NCBI GenBank assembly: GCA_033442325.1
Contig: JAWQFM010000001.1
Location: forward strand, 3,204,235 to 3,268,234
DNA: 64,000 nt
Direction: 5' to 3'
Source of the DNA: Salpingoeca rosetta
Taxonomy: Eukaryota; Protista; Choanoflagellata
This document shows positions 760 through 24,953 of this stretch, one piece after another. Both the position numbers and the translations under genes were made by a program. Within the stretch, counting starts at the first letter, position 1; every line of letters starts with the position of its first letter. The notes beneath the pieces were generated by a model. The model did not search any database, was not told the origin of the DNA, and saw only the letters and a list, made by a program, of their open reading frames with translations.

Positions 760-3700
760 CCAGTCCAATTAGCGCAGACGGCATCAAGGTCTTCGCTGGC
801 GCTGAGCAGGATGCCAACCTCTTCTTCATCACCGTCGAGGCCAAGCTCATCGCCGCTGGCATCGACGCTGGCATCATCGCCGAGGGTGGTGCTGACCACC
901 AAGGAGACGGGCAGGCTCCAGCAGCTGCCTCATCGCCGAGCCCAAGCACCCACGGTGCTTCGGGTCCCCGCACTCGCTCCCGCGCTCAACGCGGCCCGCG
1001 CCGCACTGGCGTCCGCCACGACGCGGGGGACCACGACGACGATGACGACGACGAGGGCGATGGCGACGACCACGGCGCTCAGCCATCTTCCTCCTCTTCC
1101 TCTCTCCCTTCTTCCGCCACTCCGAGCGGAGGAGCGCAGGTGGCGTCCCGAGCCTCTGGCCTGCTGGATCCCCGTGATCCACAGGTTGACGCAGCCATCT
1201 TCGCGTTCCTCCTTGGCGTCCTGACGGGACACCCGCTGCGGCTGGCCATCACCGACAACCGTGGCCGCTCCGGTGTGCTTGCGCTGCGCCGCCTCCGCGA
1301 GCGCTACATCCGCAGCGGCAAGGACCACGTCAGTCGTCTCAGGCAGCAGCTCTCCTCGACCACCTGGTTTGCCCACGGACACCGTCGACACGTTCATGTC
1401 CCGCATCACGGACATCAACTCGCAGCTCCTTGCTGCCGGCGTGTCCATCCCGGAGGACGACCTGCGCACCCTCGTCCGCAATGAACTCCCCGCGGAGTTT
1501 GATGTGGCGATGCGGTTCATGGAGCGCGAGGACCCGCCGCCATCGCTGTCCAAGATGACGGCGGACCTCATCCAGGAAGAGCGCCGCCTGCATCGTCCCA
1601 AGAAGCGCACGCCTGTGCTCGCCATCGGTGGGCCAGGCTCTGGCTCCTTCGCTGCATCGCCAATGCACGCTGGCACGTCGCCCTCCGACACGAGCGGTGG
1701 ACCATGCTGTCCACCTGCAGAGCGCGTGACTTGCGCGTTCTGCAACTTCCGCGGCCACTGCGCGCAGCAGTGCCGGCAAGCTGCAGGCGGCCAAGCGCTA
1801 CCACGTCATCGACGTGCGGCAGATTCCTGGCTACGCTGCGCAACCACGGCACCGCCAACGGCAAGCGGGCCAGGATCCTCTCGCCCGCAGCACGGACGAG
1901 CAGCTTCCTTTCGAAGAAGGGCGGCCGTCGTCAGGCAGCGGGCGCTTCGGCGGGGGAGAACTGTCGCCATCTACCACGATGCCGTCAGTGCTGCAGCCGG
2001 AGGGCGAAGAGGGCCACGCCATCGGACCAGTGCNNNNNNNNNNNNNNNNNNNNNNNNNNNNNNNNNNNNNNNNNNNNNNNNNNNNNNNNNNNNNNNNNNN
2101 NNNNNNNNNNNNNNNNNNNNNNNNNNNNNNNNNNNNNNNNNNNNNNNNNNNNNNNNNNNNNNNNNNNNNNNNNNNNNNNNNNNNNNNNNNNNNNNNNNNN
2201 NNNNNNNNNNNNNNNNNNNNNNNNNNNNNNNNNNNNNNNNNNNNNNNNNNNNNNNNNNNNNNNNNNNNNNNNNNNNNNNNNNNNNNNNNNNNNNNNNNNN
2301 NNNNNNNNNNNNNNNNNNNNNNNNNNNNNNNNNNNNNNNNNNNNNNNNNNNNNNNNNNNNNNNNNNNNNNNNNNNNNNNNNNNNNNNNNNNNNNNNNNNN
2401 NNNNNNNNNNNNNNNNNNNNNNNNNNNNNNNNNNNNNNNNNNNNNNNNNNNNNNNNNNNNNNNNNNNNNNNNNNNNNNNNNNNNNNNNNNNNNNNNNNNN
2501 NNNNNNCTAGGCCATCGCAGCAGCGCGGCCGTTGACGCCATCCGGCAGCAGATCGCCCAGGCCTCTTCCAAGCACATCGTCACCTGTGGACCATGTGCGC
2601 TTGGCAAGAGCACGCGCGCCTCCATCCCAAAGCAGTCTGCTCCACGTAGCGCTGGGCCATGCCAGCTGCTCTACGCCGACATCGCCGGTCCGCTGGAGGA
2701 GACGTCGCTGCGAGGTGCACGCTACGCGCTGACCTTCATCGACGACTGCACGCGTTTCGCCTGGACGTTTCTCATCCGGCACAAGAACGACGTCGGTGCG
2801 GCCCTGGAGCAGCTGCGCAAGGACCGTCACGTCATCAACGCGCTCCGAGGCGCCACGCTGCAGACGGACAGCGACGCCGTCTTCAAGAGCCAGGACTTCA
2901 CCGACCTGTGCCTGGCCTTCGACATCAAGCAGCGCTTCTCGCCACCGCACTCGCAGGCCAAGAACGGATCCGCGGAGCGCACCTTCCGCACCCTCTTTGA
3001 GACGGCGCGCACGATGCTGTTTGCTGCGGACCTGGACAAGCCGTTCTGGGGCTTCGCCGTGCAGCACGCCACGCTGCTGCACAACATCGCGCCACGCAGG
3101 AGCCTCAAGGACAAGTCACCGTTCGAGGCCCTGACTGGGCACGCCTTTGACGTCAGCCTGTTGCGCGTCTTCGGCTCGCCGACCTACGTGCATGTGGAGA
3201 AGAGCAGCACGCGGCACAAGCTTGACCCACGCTCACGCGTCGGCGTCTACGTCGGCTTCGCCGAGGAGGACCAGGCCCACGTCGTCTGGATGCCGGACAC
3301 GCGACGCGTTGTCCACACCATCCACGCTCGCTTCGGCGCCATCAAGAACAAGGACGCCGCCTCCTCTCAGCAGCAGCAAGAGCACAACAGCGGTGCCTCT
3401 GCTTCGCATGCCAATAAGACCGCTCAGCGTTCAACCGAGGACAGTGCCACCGGCGCTCCCACTGCACCACGTGCGGGGGAGCCGCAGCTCCAGCCACGCG
3501 CCCTTGGCGGCTCCGTCTGGGACCAGCTGCTGTTGTCCGAGACCCTCGGCGACAAGGACACCTCTGGTGGCTCAACCACCACGTGTCACGTTGCCACCAG
3601 CGCTGCTGGTACGGGGGAGAAGACATCAGCAGTGGGTGGTCATCTACCAGACATCGCTGTTGGCAGTGTTGCCACGTCAGCTGAGCCAGCCACCGTCAAG

Positions 3701-4994
3701 GAGGCGCTTGCCTCGCCAGACTCTGAGGAGTGGCGCCAAGCCATCCTGGACGAGTTTGCGGCAATGCAGGCCAATGACGTCTACGACGTCGTGCCTCGCG
3801 CTGACCTTCCCAAGGGCCACAAGCTGCTCCGCAGCATGGTCATCTTTCGGAGGAAGCGTGACGACCAGGGCAAGGTGATCAAGTACAAGGCGCGCTGGGT
3901 TGCCAAAGGCTACTCCCAGGTCCACGGTGTCAACTACACGGACACCTTTGCCCCGACGGCTACCATCGCAGCCATCCGCACCATGCTCGCCATGGCCGTC
4001 GCGCGTGGCATGGACATCCAGCAGATGGACGTCAACACGGCGTTCCTCAACGCGCCCGTGGATCACGAGATCTACGTCCAGCCACCGGCCGTCGACGGCA
4101 TCTTCTCGCCGAATACGGTCCTGCGCCTCAAGCGCGGGTTGTATGGCCTGAAGCAGAGCCCGCGCCTGTGGAACCACACGCTGGACGCCTGGATGCGCGA
4201 GCAGGACTTCATCGCCACAGCCACGGATGCCTGCATCTACCGCCGCACCTGCAAGGGTGGCAAGGTGATGTGGGTTGCCGTCTACGTGGACGACCTGCTC
4301 ATCTTCGCCGACAGCGACAGCGACATGGCCGCGTTCAAGAAGGCCATCTCCAAGCGCTTCAAGATGAAGGACCTGGGCAGCCCAGACATTTGTCTCGGCA
4401 TCAAGGTGCAGCACGNNNNNNNNNNNNNNNNNNNNNNNNNNNNNNNNNNNNNNNNNNNNNNNNNNNNNNNNNNNNNNNNNNNNNNNNNNNNNNNNNNNNN
4501 NNNNNNNNNNNNNNNNNNNNNNNNNNNNNNNNNNNNNNNNNNNNNNNNNNNNNNNNNNNNNNNNNNNNNNNNNNNNNNNNNNNNNNNNNNNNNNNNNNNN
4601 NNNNNNNNNNNNNNNNNNNNNNNNNNNNNNNNNNNNNNNNNNNNNNNNNNNNNNNNNNNNNNNNNNNNNNNNNNNNNNNNNNNNNNNNNNNNNNNNNNNN
4701 NNNNNNNNNNNNNNNNNNNNNNNNNNNNNNNNNNNNNNNNNNNNNNNNNNNNNNNNNNNNNNNNNNNNNNNNNNNNNNNNNNNNNNNNNNNNNNNNNNNN
4801 NNNNNNNNNNNNNNNNNNNNNNNNNNNNNNNNNNNNNNNNNNNNNNNNNNNNNNNNNNNNNNNNNNNNNNNNNNNNNNNNNNNNNNNNNNNNNNNNNNNN
4901 NNNNNNNNNNNNNNNNNNNNNNNNNNNNNNNNNNNNNNNNNNNNNNNNNNNNNNNNNNNNNNNNNNNNNNNNNNNNNNNNNNNNNNNNNNNNNN

Positions 4995-7900
4995 CTTCGC
5001 CCGGCTCTCAAAGCCATCGTATCCGACATGCGGAATGGCCGACTTGAGACAACATCACACGTAAGTCTCAACATGGTTGCGTATGCCATCGCCCGTGTGT
5101 AGTGCGCCGCGCTTGCTGTGCCTGAAACCCTGAGATTTCGCGCTGTGGACTTATGTACCATCTGGTGACGTTTTTTGTATGGTGACGCAGCGTACGCGGC
5201 GTCCAGGGCGCAAGCCTCGTGATCGCAATGGACGTGGCGATTGTGGCAAGAGCACCAAGCAGGGAAAACGTGGGCAGAAGCGACGCGGTCAAGATCAGAA
5301 CAAGAACCCAAGGTTTGCTCTTGCATAGCCTGCCTGCTGCGCTATGTTGCATGCGTTGTGTTTGTGCTGCGTGAACCGCTTGCCGTCTGCACCTGTGACT
5401 GAACCCTTGTCGCTTGGCCCTGCGCCCGCTCACACTTTGCCCTCTTCCAACTGCAATTATCGATGTTGGTGCACAACAGGGTGGCGGTCCTGATGCCCTT
5501 CAAGCGGCTTGGAGTGGAGCTGGAGCGCTCAAAGGTGCTGGAGATGTGCAGGTATGGCCGACAATGCGCTGAACTGCCTGACTGCTTCCTTCACTGCACC
5601 ATGCACCCTTCATCCCACTCTCGCACTTCATGCGAGGTTCGTGCCCGCGTGCGCAATCACACGCTCATGCATGCGCACACCCGCCCTGCCTTGTCACGCA
5701 CATCCACGCTTGACGCAGGTATGCTGGGCAGATGAAGTGCACTGCAACCACGGCACTCTACCTGCACATTCTGCGCACTGCGGAACAACACCACCGGGAA
5801 ATCCTCTCCACTCTGGCGGACCTCGCCCAGACCACAAGAAAGGAAATTGTGGAGCGCAAGGTCGCCTTCCGCGAGGCCCAGGAGCGTGCCGAAGGCGTCG
5901 AGGACCTCAAGAAGAAGAAGAAGAAGAAGGACCACAAGAAGTCCCGAGCGGCGTCGCCGTCTGACAACCCGTGCAAGAGGGCAAAAGGTGCAGCAGCAAC
6001 AACAGCAGCCACAGCAACAGCAGCCGCAGCAACAACACCGCCCGCCACTGCAACAACAGTCACAGCAGCAGCCACAGGCAAATCCCCAAGACCTGCCTAC
6101 TGCTTCCAGCACTTGGCGCCACAGCTGACAGCAGACAAGCTAAGCAACCTCTTCACCACACTGCGCAACCACAAAAAACATAGCCAGCATCCGATGCTGT
6201 CAATCCTCCGACAGCACGGCGTGGGGATACCGGACCCACCGAAATGGATGACGGCCACCATGGTATGTCTGTGCGCATGCTTGCGTGTTTGCCTTGTCTG
6301 CTTGATGACCCTCCTCGCATGCCTGCTGTTGCTACATCATGCATCGCGGTGTGTGTCCCCGCTCGACCAACGCGACACACACAACCAACTCATACACACA
6401 CAACCCAAACCAACTCACACGCGTGTTTGCACGTGCTCATCTTCACCACTTAGGCATACAAGCTGCTGAACCTGGCGTCCAAAGAGTTCACCCCGCTCCT
6501 CCAACGGGATCTCAAGAACAAGGCGAGAGCTGCTCAACGGCAACTGAAGAAGGTGGCGGAGCACCATGACGAAGGCGCGCGCTTCGCATGTGAGCACACG
6601 GCCGAGCTGGCCCTCTACATCGGCGCCGCGCAGCATCTTGCGAGGACCCTTGCACCGCCCGACACCGACTTGACCTCGTTCAAGATATTCCCCACATTCA
6701 CAAACAAGCACCCTTTCATACAACTAGATGCAGGACTACTACGGTACCTGACCTGCTGCAAGTGTGGCCGCCTCGGCCACTCCCAGCGCCAGTGCCGACA
6801 GCCTGCCGCAGTGCGACCACAGCCAAGGCAAGCTCTGTCCCTCCTCGATTTCCTCGGAGCAGACGTGGCCAGGCAGTTCCGGAAGCGTCGCGTCACGTCC
6901 ATCAGGACGGACGGCTACACGGCATACCTCCTAGTGGAGCCCAGCGCGCGCCGCGACACCGTCTGCGACACCAGCCCCATCACACCCGTGGTTGGGGTCG
7001 ACCCAGGCACCCGCATCCCGCTTGCCTGCGTTCGGATCCAAGATGGCAAAAAAATGATTGTGTCGCAGAAGCGAATAGTGAACCAGCTTTATACGGGGCG
7101 GGGACGGCGACACCACAAGCCAACGGCGACAGTGCCAGCAAGGTCAGGGGGTAGCGACGAGGGTGGGGAGCAGGGAGGGGCGATGGGGAAGGGGGAGACG
7201 GGGTCACGCAGGAAGAAGAGGGAGCGGGGCAAGCGGACGAAGAGGGAGAGGAGCAGGCGCAGGAAAGAGAAGGCACGGATTGAGAAGGAGGAGCAGCTGA
7301 GACGACAGCAGCAGGAGGAGCAGGGAGGCAGGGACAAGGGAGAGGGGCAGGAAGGNNNNNNNNNNNNNNNNNNNNNNNNNNNNNNNNNNNNNNNNNNNNN
7401 NNNNNNNNNNNNNNNNNNNNNNNNNNNNNNNNNNNNNNNNNNNNNNNNNNNNNNNNNNNNNNNNNNNNNNNNNNNNNNNNNNNNNNNNNNNNNNNNNNNN
7501 NNNNNNNNNNNNNNNNNNNNNNNNNNNNNNNNNNNNNNNNNNNNNNNNNNNNNNNNNNNNNNNNNNNNNNNNNNNNNNNNNNNNNNNNNNNNNNNNNNNN
7601 NNNNNNNNNNNNNNNNNNNNNNNNNNNNNNNNNNNNNNNNNNNNNNNNNNNNNNNNNNNNNNNNNNNNNNNNNNNNNNNNNNNNNNNNNNNNNNNNNNNN
7701 NNNNNNNNNNNNNNNNNNNNNNNNNNNNNNNNNNNNNNNNNNNNNNNNNNNNNNNNNNNNNNNNNNNNNNNNNNNNNNNNNNNNNNNNNNNNNNNNNNNN
7801 NNNNNNNNNNNNNNNNNNNNNNNNNNNNNNNNNNNNNNNNNNNNNNNNNNNNNNNNNNNNNNNNNNNNNNNNNNNNNNNNNNNNNNNNNNNNNNNNNNNN

Positions 7901-8743
7901 NNNNNNNNNNNNNNNNNNNNNNNNNNNNNNNNNNNNNNNNNNNNNNNNNNNNNNNNNNNNNNNNNNNNNNNNNNNNNNNNNNNNNNNNNNNNNNNNNNNN
8001 NNNNNNNNNNNNNNNNNNNNNNNNNNNNNNNNNNNNNNNNNNNNNNNNNNNNNNNNNNNNNNNNNNNNNNNNNNNNNNNNNNNNNNNNNNNNNNNNNNNN
8101 NNNNNNNNNNNNNNNNNNNNNNNNNNNNNNNNNNNNNNNNNNNNNNNNNNNNNNNNNNNNNNNNNNNNNNNNNNNNNCGCACTGCGGTGCGTCTGCTGAC
8201 CGAGACGTTGCTGCGCAAAGACTATCGCTGCGAGGTATGGTTCCATGTAGGCGAGCGTGTGCGTGTGTATGTGAATGCGTGTGTGTAAATATGTATGCGT
8301 GTATGCGTGTGTGCACGTGTGAATGCGTGTGTGCATGTGTGTATGCGAGTGTGCATGTGTGTACATGTGAGTGCATGAGTTTGTGCGTGAGCGCATGTGT
8401 GTGTGTGTGTGTGTAAATGCGTATGAGTGAGTGTAAATTGTATATATGTGTGTGTGTGTGCATGTGCGAGTGCATGTGTGCACACGTGTGTGTGTGTGTG
8501 TGCATGTGCATGTGCGAGTGCATGTGTGCACGTGTGTGCACGTGTGTGTGTGCTGTTCCGCAATCTCACCGCAATCGATGCGCCCGTGCCTTGTGGGTGT
8601 GCAGGTCCCTGGTGGAGGAGGCAAACGGTGAGCTTGGTCCGTGGCGTGGGTCCTCCGAGCCGGACGGTCCTGATATGGATAACGGGCTGGTGACAGTGTC
8701 GCGCCGCATGTGTCGCGAATGGAGCATAGCAAACGTGGGATGA
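4995..8743 (+). CDS. Fanzor1-like (eukaryotic TnpB) RuvC endonuclease, multi-exon, 5' end and middle in gaps
   Basis: Phase-consistent GT-AG exons 4995-5060, 5191-5312, 5480-5551, 5719-6262, 6454-7355(gap), 8178-8234, 8605-8743. Motifs: FKIFP..FIQLD, SIRTDGY (6898-6918), RuvC-I VVGVDPG (D at 7000-7002), Zn-finger half plus RuvC-III HCGASADRDVA (8180-8212). A 1-nt slip at ~8214 gives AKTIAAR, which splices in frame to SLVEEANGELGPWR...stop. Confidence 0.82.
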
Positions 8744-8799
<56 letters not shown>

Positions 8800-8830
8800 T
8801 TGTTGTTGTTGTTGTTGCTGCTGCTGCTGC
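8744..8830. repeat. (CTG/TTG)n trinucleotide microsatellite
   Basis: Directly visible after the Fanzor stop codon. Confidence 0.95.
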
Positions 8831-8962
8831 GTTCATCTTCGTGCTGCTGCTCTTGTTGTCGTGGTTGTTGCAGATGACTGCCGTTGCTTGTTCAAGCAGA
8901 ATCCCCTCACTAACGCCCCTCACACAAGTCTCATGCACGTGTGATGAACCTTGCCTTACACA

Positions 8963-9150
8963 GCATCGGCACCATCTGGGCCTCTAGCCTGGATGGTCTG
9001 GCGGCACACTCTGGTGCTCCAGAAGGGCTCACGCGTTCTTCTGGACCCGGATGAGGTCGCCATCCTTCCTGTCGGTCCGTTGGGCTGGCAGGAGGAAGGT
9101 ATGTTGTGGGGGTTACCACGCCACTCGTTGTCGGTTCGGGTGCCATGCAT
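8963..9150 (+). ncRNA. Candidate Fanzor omegaRNA scaffold (structured RNA)
   Basis: Hairpins 8971-8997 (11 bp), 9018-9045 (11 bp) and 9065-9095 (14 bp), enclosing stem 8999-9005/9056-9062 and possible closing stem 8963-8973/9139-9148. Many G-U pairs work only on the + strand. Lies just 3' of the Fanzor ORF. Confidence 0.45.
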
Positions 9151-9828
9151 TCAGTCAGTCAGACAGCCAGTCACGCCCTGTGTTGTGGTTGTGAACGATG
9201 GCATCAGAATGGACCCAAACTCGTCGCTCACGCATACACACGCACATGCACACACACGCACACGCGCGCGCACGCACACGCACACGCACATGCACACGCG
9301 CGCACGCACACGCACACGCACATGCACACGCGCGCACGCACACACACACACACACACATGCACACGCACACATACACGACGCACCTGGTTGAACGGACTG
9401 CGACTCGCACCGTTCCATGACTCTGGACGCTCCAACCAACAAACTCGTGGAACTGCGCCGGAACGGATGTCTCCCGCGTGCTGGCGTCCGCCTTGCTCTT
9501 GCCCTCGCCTTCGCCCTCTTCATTGTCTCTCCGCTCATCTGTTCGTGCGCTGGATATGATAACAATGATGCGTGTTCCATGCCGTCGTCCTCTTGCTCTC
9601 TTGCTGGCCGTGCGATTCGCGTGCCTGGCCATTCGTTGTCGCTGCTTGCGCTTGCTTTGTCGCCTCTCCTTCTCTCCTTCATTGCTTGCTCTGGTGATTA
9701 TCCTTCTTCCCCCCCGTTTTTTTTTCTTTTTGCGATTCGATGGGTGCGCAGACCGCGGTCATGCGCAGTTCAAACCTCGTTCTGCGTGTCGCCCGCGGTC
9801 ATTGTTGCTGTGCTGAGGAACAAAGACG

Positions 9829-20792: not shown

Positions 20793-24953
<4,161 letters not shown>

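Follow-up and report, generated by a model that had tools for sequence, protein, structure and literature searches.

Among eukaryotes, Fanzors are the only RNA-guided DNA nucleases known so far, and their biological function is still open (PMC10432273). The Fanzor1 kind includes SpuFz1 of Spizellomyces punctatus (PDB 8GKH; Bao & Jurka 2013, PMC3627910; Saito et al. 2023, PMC10432273). Fanzors measure 400–700 amino acids (aa) (PMC10432273) and are described by the motif D-X(125,275)-[TS][TS]-X-X-[C4 zinc finger]-X(5,50)-RD (PMC3627910). For Salpingoeca, only two Fanzor2 families were reported by Bao and Jurka in 2013 (PMC3627910), and choanoflagellates are mentioned under Fz2 by Saito et al. 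(PMC10432273). We analyzed a 64,000-nt stretch of Salpingoeca rosetta DNA (the window; 57% G+C, nine N gaps), in which an earlier note had placed a hidden, spliced Fanzor1 gene at 4995–8743. A 15-exon gene that fuses an EXO1-like 5' nuclease to a Fanzor1-type nuclease is present in four ~98% identical copies, and this interval very probably represents the 3' two-thirds of one of them.

The proposed structure of seven exon segments joined through five phase-compatible GT-AG introns was borne out by splicing. All visible introns are flanked by GT..AG, and the first five segments gave 568 open codons in a single frame. The segment at 6454–7355, which runs into an assembly gap, holds FKIFP..FIQLD, IRTDG and VVGVDPG; HCGASADRDVAA (HCGASADRD) was located at 8180–8215 in exon 14, after which the frame is lost. 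The order of these motifs and the positions of two Asp codons (GAC), at 7000–7002 (GVDPG) and 8204–8206 (DRD), were read directly and agree with those first given. By our own estimate, ~300 linker codons without a stop have a chance expectation of roughly 2e-5. Exon numbers in the following list are those of the full gene.

4995..5060, + strand: 3' end of exon 8 (its last 66 nt), C-terminal extension of the EXO1-like module, ..LRPALKAIVSDMRNGRLETTSH; 1 mismatch to positions 100–165 of exon 8 in the copy on contig C8
5191..5312, + strand: exon 9, Arg/Lys-rich linker resembling a nuclear localization signal (NLS); AG/GT flanks, open frame, junction reads on both sides
5480..5551, + strand: exon 10, where the Fanzor module begins, VAVLMPFKRLGVELERSKVLEMCR; the segment into exon 11 is 46% conserved in the related C2/C7 family
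5719..6262, + strand: exon 11, encoding a helical, REC-like part in which Lys and Ala/Thr form low-complexity runs, within the annotated PTSG_04012
6454..7355, + strand: exon 12, visible part, with FKIFP..FIQLD, CCHC knuckle, IRTDG, RuvC-I GVDPG and a K/R/E-rich insertion
7356..8177, + strand: assembly gap, which by the paralogs covers the end of exon 12, intron 12, exon 13, intron 13 and the start of exon 14
8178..8234, + strand: exon 14, visible part, with zinc-finger CTHC and RuvC-III DRD; one C lost near 8214
8605..8743, + strand: exon 15, identical to C8 exon 15; stop TGA at 8741–8743
8744..9801, + strand: 3' untranslated part of the repeat unit, with a sharp end at ~9801 (..GCCCGCGGTCA) and a structured stretch at 8940–9115
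1814..4415, + strand: Ty1/copia-type pol (integrase, SH3-like, RVT_2), separating exon 8 from the 5' exons that are not visible

A six-frame search of the organism's own genome returned three further copies at 98–99% aa identity, on contigs C8, C12 and C10, and a 34%-identical relative on contig C2. C8 and C12 are continuous across the gap region, with 1090 and 809 bp, respectively, opposite the 822 N of the window. The gap flanks (window 7355 to C8 index 21782; window 8178 to C8 index 22873) proved collinear with the paralogs and in frame at the family level. The bridged stretch opens with the 243 nt that complete exon 12 (..FGRDCRVFFGD), followed by a 161-nt intron 12, a 156-nt exon 13 in C8 and C12 (CVHKGRGGG..KIVEEFRTTKYSLCCAWPNRIDEQTR, also given as ..VEEFRTTKYSLCCAWPNRIDEQTR), intron 13, and the first 14 nt of the zinc-finger/RuvC-III exon 14 (IATCTHCGASADRDVAAAKTIAAR). 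The RuvC-II Glu and the rest of the zinc finger had been predicted to lie in this gap, and both were found in exon 13 of the bridging paralogs, as VEEFRTT and an adjacent Cys-Cys. The Glu strand also reads VEEFRTT in C10 and VDEFRTT in the C2 family, its place in the window falling in the gap. Identical exon 12-13-14 junctions are used in the public gene model PTSG_12014. Intron 13 (C8 index 22343–22858; L007 7143–7658) consists of ~90-bp tandem repeats, 516 nt long in C8 and 261 nt in C12, which likely caused the assembly gap. The 1-nt slip reported at ~8214 is present in the window assembly as a deletion in a CC run (GCTGCGCAAAG, versus GCTGCCGCAAAG in C8 and C12). It is absent from these paralogs and from RNA, reads on the C8 copy carrying no indel at 10% or more at the site.

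The extent of the gene had to be revised. The Fanzor exons stood, whereas the segment claimed as the first exon closes an EXO1-like domain encoded further upstream, so that the true gene is a 15-exon EXO1-Fanzor fusion with its 5' half outside 4995–8743. On C8 (locus C8:1604561–1610941, minus strand), that segment is preceded by seven further exons and by the remaining 5' portion of exon 8, GT-AG flanked and in phase, and the gene starts with ATGGGCGTACCAGGA.. (MGVPGLINL..). A composite of C8 with window exons 9–11 spans 3423 nt and 1140 codons, with the sole stop at its end. Its first 390 residues form a complete XPG_N/XPG_I nuclease (XPG_N 26.9 and 33.6 bits, XPG_I 63.9 bits, all above Pfam cut-offs; C8 copy only), of which the window shows just the last 22 residues. 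The closest solved match of the XPG_I exon in PDB was human EXO1 residues 145–184 (E 9e-9); exon 7 of this module alone gave no match in PDB or Pfam. The module contains the acidic motifs AIDIS, VFDG, EADAQ, SDDSD and GCDY, which we take to be the active-site motifs of the XPG family. It shares these domains and motifs, and an H3TH-like GIG segment, with EXO1/Rad2-XPG nucleases. Unlike EXO1, it has the Fanzor nuclease in place of the usual C-terminal partner-binding tail, and its gene lies on a dispersed repeat. The order XPG then Fanzor is collinear in the diverged C2/C7 family (30–56% identical). The predicted protein runs from the EXO1-like 5' nuclease (XPG_N, XPG_I, H3TH) through the basic NLS-like linker to a very divergent Fanzor1-type nuclease. 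The latter has a WED/REC part, into which the CCHC knuckle is inserted, and the RuvC-I Asp; VEEFRTT with the relocated RuvC-II Glu, the zinc ribbon (CC..CxxC) and the RuvC-III DRD come after these. A full-text literature search found no paper combining Fanzor and XPG, and none of the papers on Fanzor, exonuclease and fusion, as judged by title and abstract, was about a natural fusion.

The fusion gene is transcribed and spliced as one mRNA. Raw reads of two RNA-seq runs and contigs of two further runs (probably RNA) were compared with the C8 gene (L025, C8:1604961–1610960). Twelve of its 14 splice junctions appeared directly in RNA, those of introns 1–11 and 13 (CT..AC joints, that is, GT..AG on the gene strand), and the strand pattern matches a stranded library and a minus-strand gene on C8. 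The directly observed junctions include 8-9, 9-10, 10-11, 11-12 and 13-14 of the exons represented in the window. Exon 14-15 was joined by read ends, with 72 and 54 reads running from exon 14 into exon-15 sequence; the intron 12 junction, not among the RNA rows shown, rests on the public gene model. Two transcript contigs cross both modules, one of 2280 nt (exons 7–12) and one of 3289 nt (exons 1–12, intron 4 retained).

These data bear on a simpler arrangement, in which a stand-alone Fanzor1 gene starts at an internal Met, as in PTSG_04012 and PTSG_12014, and the EXO1-like exons belong to a separate neighbor. The public models do start at Met codons in exon 11, and RNA depth is uneven along the gene. 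However, the annotated starts fall at assembly indels or gaps, and exon 1 reads through to exon 15 without a stop across phase-compatible junctions. Junction reads connect exons 7-8-9-10-11-12, single contigs cover exons 7–12 and 1–12, and the C2/C7 family has the identical order. We consider two separate genes quite unlikely and retain the fusion.

A spliced antisense transcript was also seen over Fanzor exons 12–14 (L025 160–1600, equivalent to window about 7000–8190, minus strand). It has a joint at L025 162->728, GT..AG on the opposite strand and carried by 39–44 reads, and a second at 880->1164. Antisense depth exceeded sense depth at L025 1201–1400.

The C8 exon-12 translation retrieved two S. 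rosetta proteins, PTSG_12014 (P0001, 485 aa, 100%) and PTSG_04012 (P0002). The gene was therefore only partly hidden: both are sister copies that already bear the labels hypothetical or CCHC-type domain protein, and the source database of PTSG_12014 lists a precomputed match to PF07282. A phmmer search of 1.84 billion representatives gave P0003 as the sole non-self match (E 8e-4), reading ..TTDG..GLDPG..YGRDCTVYFGDWS..VDEFRTSRICNAC..DRDANAAANI. The P0003-family profile matched solved Fanzor1 proteins (SpuFz1, 8GKH, 5e-51; PpFz1, 1.4e-39; GtFz1, 4e-34), and hhalign related the fusion-gene family to the P0003 family at 95.5% probability (E 1.6e-8). The link to solved Fanzor1 is transitive (P0001 to P0003 to 8GKH). 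With a Fanzor1-family profile, the spliced protein scored 24.6 bits versus 9.4–9.6 bits for S. rosetta Fanzor2-like open reading frames (ORFs). The nearest ESM Atlas clusters were TNB+DUF8286 proteins of fungi and giant viruses (score 0.94, 175 shared features). The C2 paralogue, 56% identical over this block, matched PF07282 at 28.7 bits in one exon, above the cut-off. In alignment A1 with Fanzor1 relatives, T175 and G177 (IRTDG) and D206 and P207 (GVDPG) are nearly invariant.

The Fanzor module resembles Fanzor1 in its TDG..GxDPG RuvC-I, in FGDW/C followed by VDEFRT[ST] with the relocated Glu, and in a zinc ribbon followed by DRD. Further likenesses are that the gene has introns and occurs in multiple copies, and that a basic stretch resembles an NLS. 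The TT and RD fit the Bao-Jurka motif, as does the D-to-TT spacing of 232 residues, within the published 125–275. In contrast to Fanzor1, the fusion carries an in-frame EXO1-like nuclease, the CCHC knuckle and a ~120-aa K/R/E-rich insertion. It is about 1140 aa long as against 400–700 aa for Fanzors (PMC10432273), and the search of 1.84 billion representatives yielded one distant match. Its finger reads TT-x4-CC..x15..CxxC instead of TT-x2-CxxC ([TS][TS]-x2-CxxC in Fanzor1). Fanzor1-type homology is taken as established, and the protein is regarded as an outlier of the Fanzor1 kind because of its TT-x4-CC...CxxC finger, its DRDVAAAKTI, the CCHC knuckle and the long charged insertion. The earlier identification of a spliced TnpB/Fanzor1-type RuvC nuclease in a choanoflagellate is supported by the P0003 link and the hhalign result.

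The CCHC zinc knuckle itself (CCKCGRLGHSQRQC, window 6751–6801, + strand) is of retroviral type and, as an insertion, separates the FIQLD strand from the IRTDG strand. The C2/C7 family lacks it; in the C10 copy it scores 22.4 bits, which exceeds the Pfam cut-off. Pfam searches with the visible 300 aa of exon 12 and with exon 11 gave nothing significant except a weak CCHC match, and phmmer of PTSG_12014 directly against PDB sequences returned nucleocapsid zinc knuckles only.

Several results weigh against a fusion with a Fanzor1-type nuclease. PTSG_12014 scored 25.7 bits (E 1.3e-5) with PF07282 (Cas12f1-like TNB), 0.6 bit below the cut-off of 26.3. The AlphaFold model of P0001, computed from an alignment that included Fanzor1 relatives, was poor (pLDDT, the predicted score on the local distance difference test, 56.6). 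Even so, none of the top 50 Foldseek matches of this weak model in PDB (lowest E 4e-5) fell outside Cas12f, Fanzor, TnpB and other Cas12; their template-modeling (TM) scores were only 0.2–0.29 (about 0.25). The first zinc-finger CxxC is replaced by adjacent Cys-Cys, and RuvC-III reads DRDVAAAKTI versus the usual DRDxNAAxNI. Shorter additional transcripts are compatible with contigs that span both halves. Every assembled copy has a defect, no guide RNA (omega-RNA) was found by Rfam, and the structured stretch at 8940–9115 is not at the element end. The resection and homing steps set out below, finally, are ones we infer by analogy only.

The altered residues could also mean that the Fanzor module has lost its RuvC activity and now serves for targeting, by RNA guidance or by plain DNA binding, leaving XPG as the sole working nuclease. 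Both Asn of DRDxNAAxNI are missing, and the first zinc-finger Cys pair is altered. Both diverged families nevertheless retain D820, E1049 or E1050, and D1085 (composite numbering), the three catalytic positions. We give this loss of RuvC activity a slim chance, and continue to treat the module as a putative nuclease.

The defects differ among the copies. C8 has indels in exon 11, C10 has large gaps, and in C12 the ATG is lost and exon 5 contains a gap. At three of the six C8 indel sites, ~90% of RNA reads have window-like, in-frame letters (e.g. 47/52 reads); at the other three, roughly half to three-quarters do. This points to misassembly of C8 or to transcripts of a different copy, and C8 was judged the best candidate for a working copy. 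The ratio of nonsynonymous to synonymous differences (pN/pS) among copies, at 0.05–0.38 with intron divergence of about 2.3% and small counts, is consistent with purifying selection. The opposite interpretation is that the whole family consists of decaying pseudogenes, transcribed and non-functional, whose Fanzor likeness is a relic. The defect in each assembled copy favors it, as do the antisense transcript overlapping exons 12–14 and a search of metagenome and viral contigs with the conserved C-terminal block, which found no relative beyond the S. rosetta genome. It is opposed by the low pN/pS, by the intact versions of the C8 indel sites in RNA, by the retention of all splice sites and catalytic residues, and by the homopolymer type of the C8 indels, which is typical of assembly error. 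Decay of the entire family is, in our assessment, unlikely.

The window copy is another matter. The 9.8 kb (9804 bases, contig C1) directly before the window are N throughout, so that exons 1–7 of this copy are not visible. A Ty1/copia pol (Pfam rve 33.3, SH3_retrovirus 64.6 and RVT_2 182.2 bits; ORF broken by gaps) lies inside the repeat unit of the window and adjoins the gap before exon 8; the other copies contain nothing of the kind at this place. With copia inserted, one nucleotide deleted and the 5' exons not visible, we judged this copy as most likely dead or defective. The proposed endonuclease gene is probably not functional in this copy, and the damaged window copy is in itself of lesser value.

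The copies sit on a ~16-kb dispersed repeat with sharp shared ends. All four, together with three solo fragments, stop at the identical 3' base, and at least 10 copies of the 5' segment were found. The window unit extends from 13.46 kb ahead of the window to position 9801, which makes it about 7 kb longer than the C8 unit. A search for terminal inverted repeats between the repeat ends gave 12–13-nt chance matches only. No target-site duplication is claimed, since a 10-bp repeat flanking the C8 copy was not reproduced at other copies. The upstream ORFs of the 16-kb unit contained no transposase, only UTP20_N fragments. These fragments of U3 snoRNP protein 20 (L011, C8:1608000–1617999, at 6570–6962 and 7813–8166, +, opposite the fusion gene) look like a captured piece of a host gene. 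The window stretch 8940–9115 (+), about 200 nt past the stop and about 690 nt before the 3' end of the repeat, folds as a multi-hairpin structure (−90.7 kcal/mol, z −5.6 versus dinucleotide shuffles) and is a possible RNA element. Rfam matches were well below gathering scores and were dismissed as microsatellite artefacts, and no 3' segment conserved with the C2 family was found.

Joining the two nucleases in one polypeptide would allow an active 'cut-and-resect' selfish module, a possibility that we advance tentatively and regard as doubtful. The Fanzor module would make a double-strand cut, presumably guided by an RNA encoded by the element, by analogy with TnpB and Fanzor; programmability of the module is likewise conjectural. 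The tethered EXO1 module would then resect the 5' ends, biasing repair to homologous recombination and so promoting homing or retention of the 16-kb element through its copying or keeping. Engineered exonuclease-Cas fusions such as TREX2-SpCas9 (PMC13370227) similarly tether an end-processing nuclease to a programmable-type DNA cutter. Those are man-made, whereas the S. rosetta fusion is natural and known here from sequence and transcripts. If the proposal is true, genome editors fused to exonucleases would have a precedent in nature in the cut-and-resect module. A natural in-frame fusion, on one mRNA and in two diverged families, would suggest how elements steer repair after cutting and would offer a ready-made design for editors favoring recombination.

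The Salpingoeca Fanzor2 families occur in the same organism, and TnpB-type ORFs on C14 and C29 match PF07282 at 56–57 bits. These ORFs differ from the fusion in an LLPRF-type RuvC-II strand and RDANAARNIL, and gave no phmmer match to the fusion protein. These Fanzor2/TnpB-like ORFs, at L023 (C29:220000–228999) 4030–5259 (−) and in L022 (C14:433000–440999), contain SIDPGVR, LLPRF, DEAWTSKTCGRCG and RDANAARNIL. XPG_I-like remnants (APGEADHQLAAM, SSDSDML) lie at L022 1–700, just upstream of the Fanzor2 ORF, a hint that a second Fanzor lineage has also been paired with a 5' nuclease.

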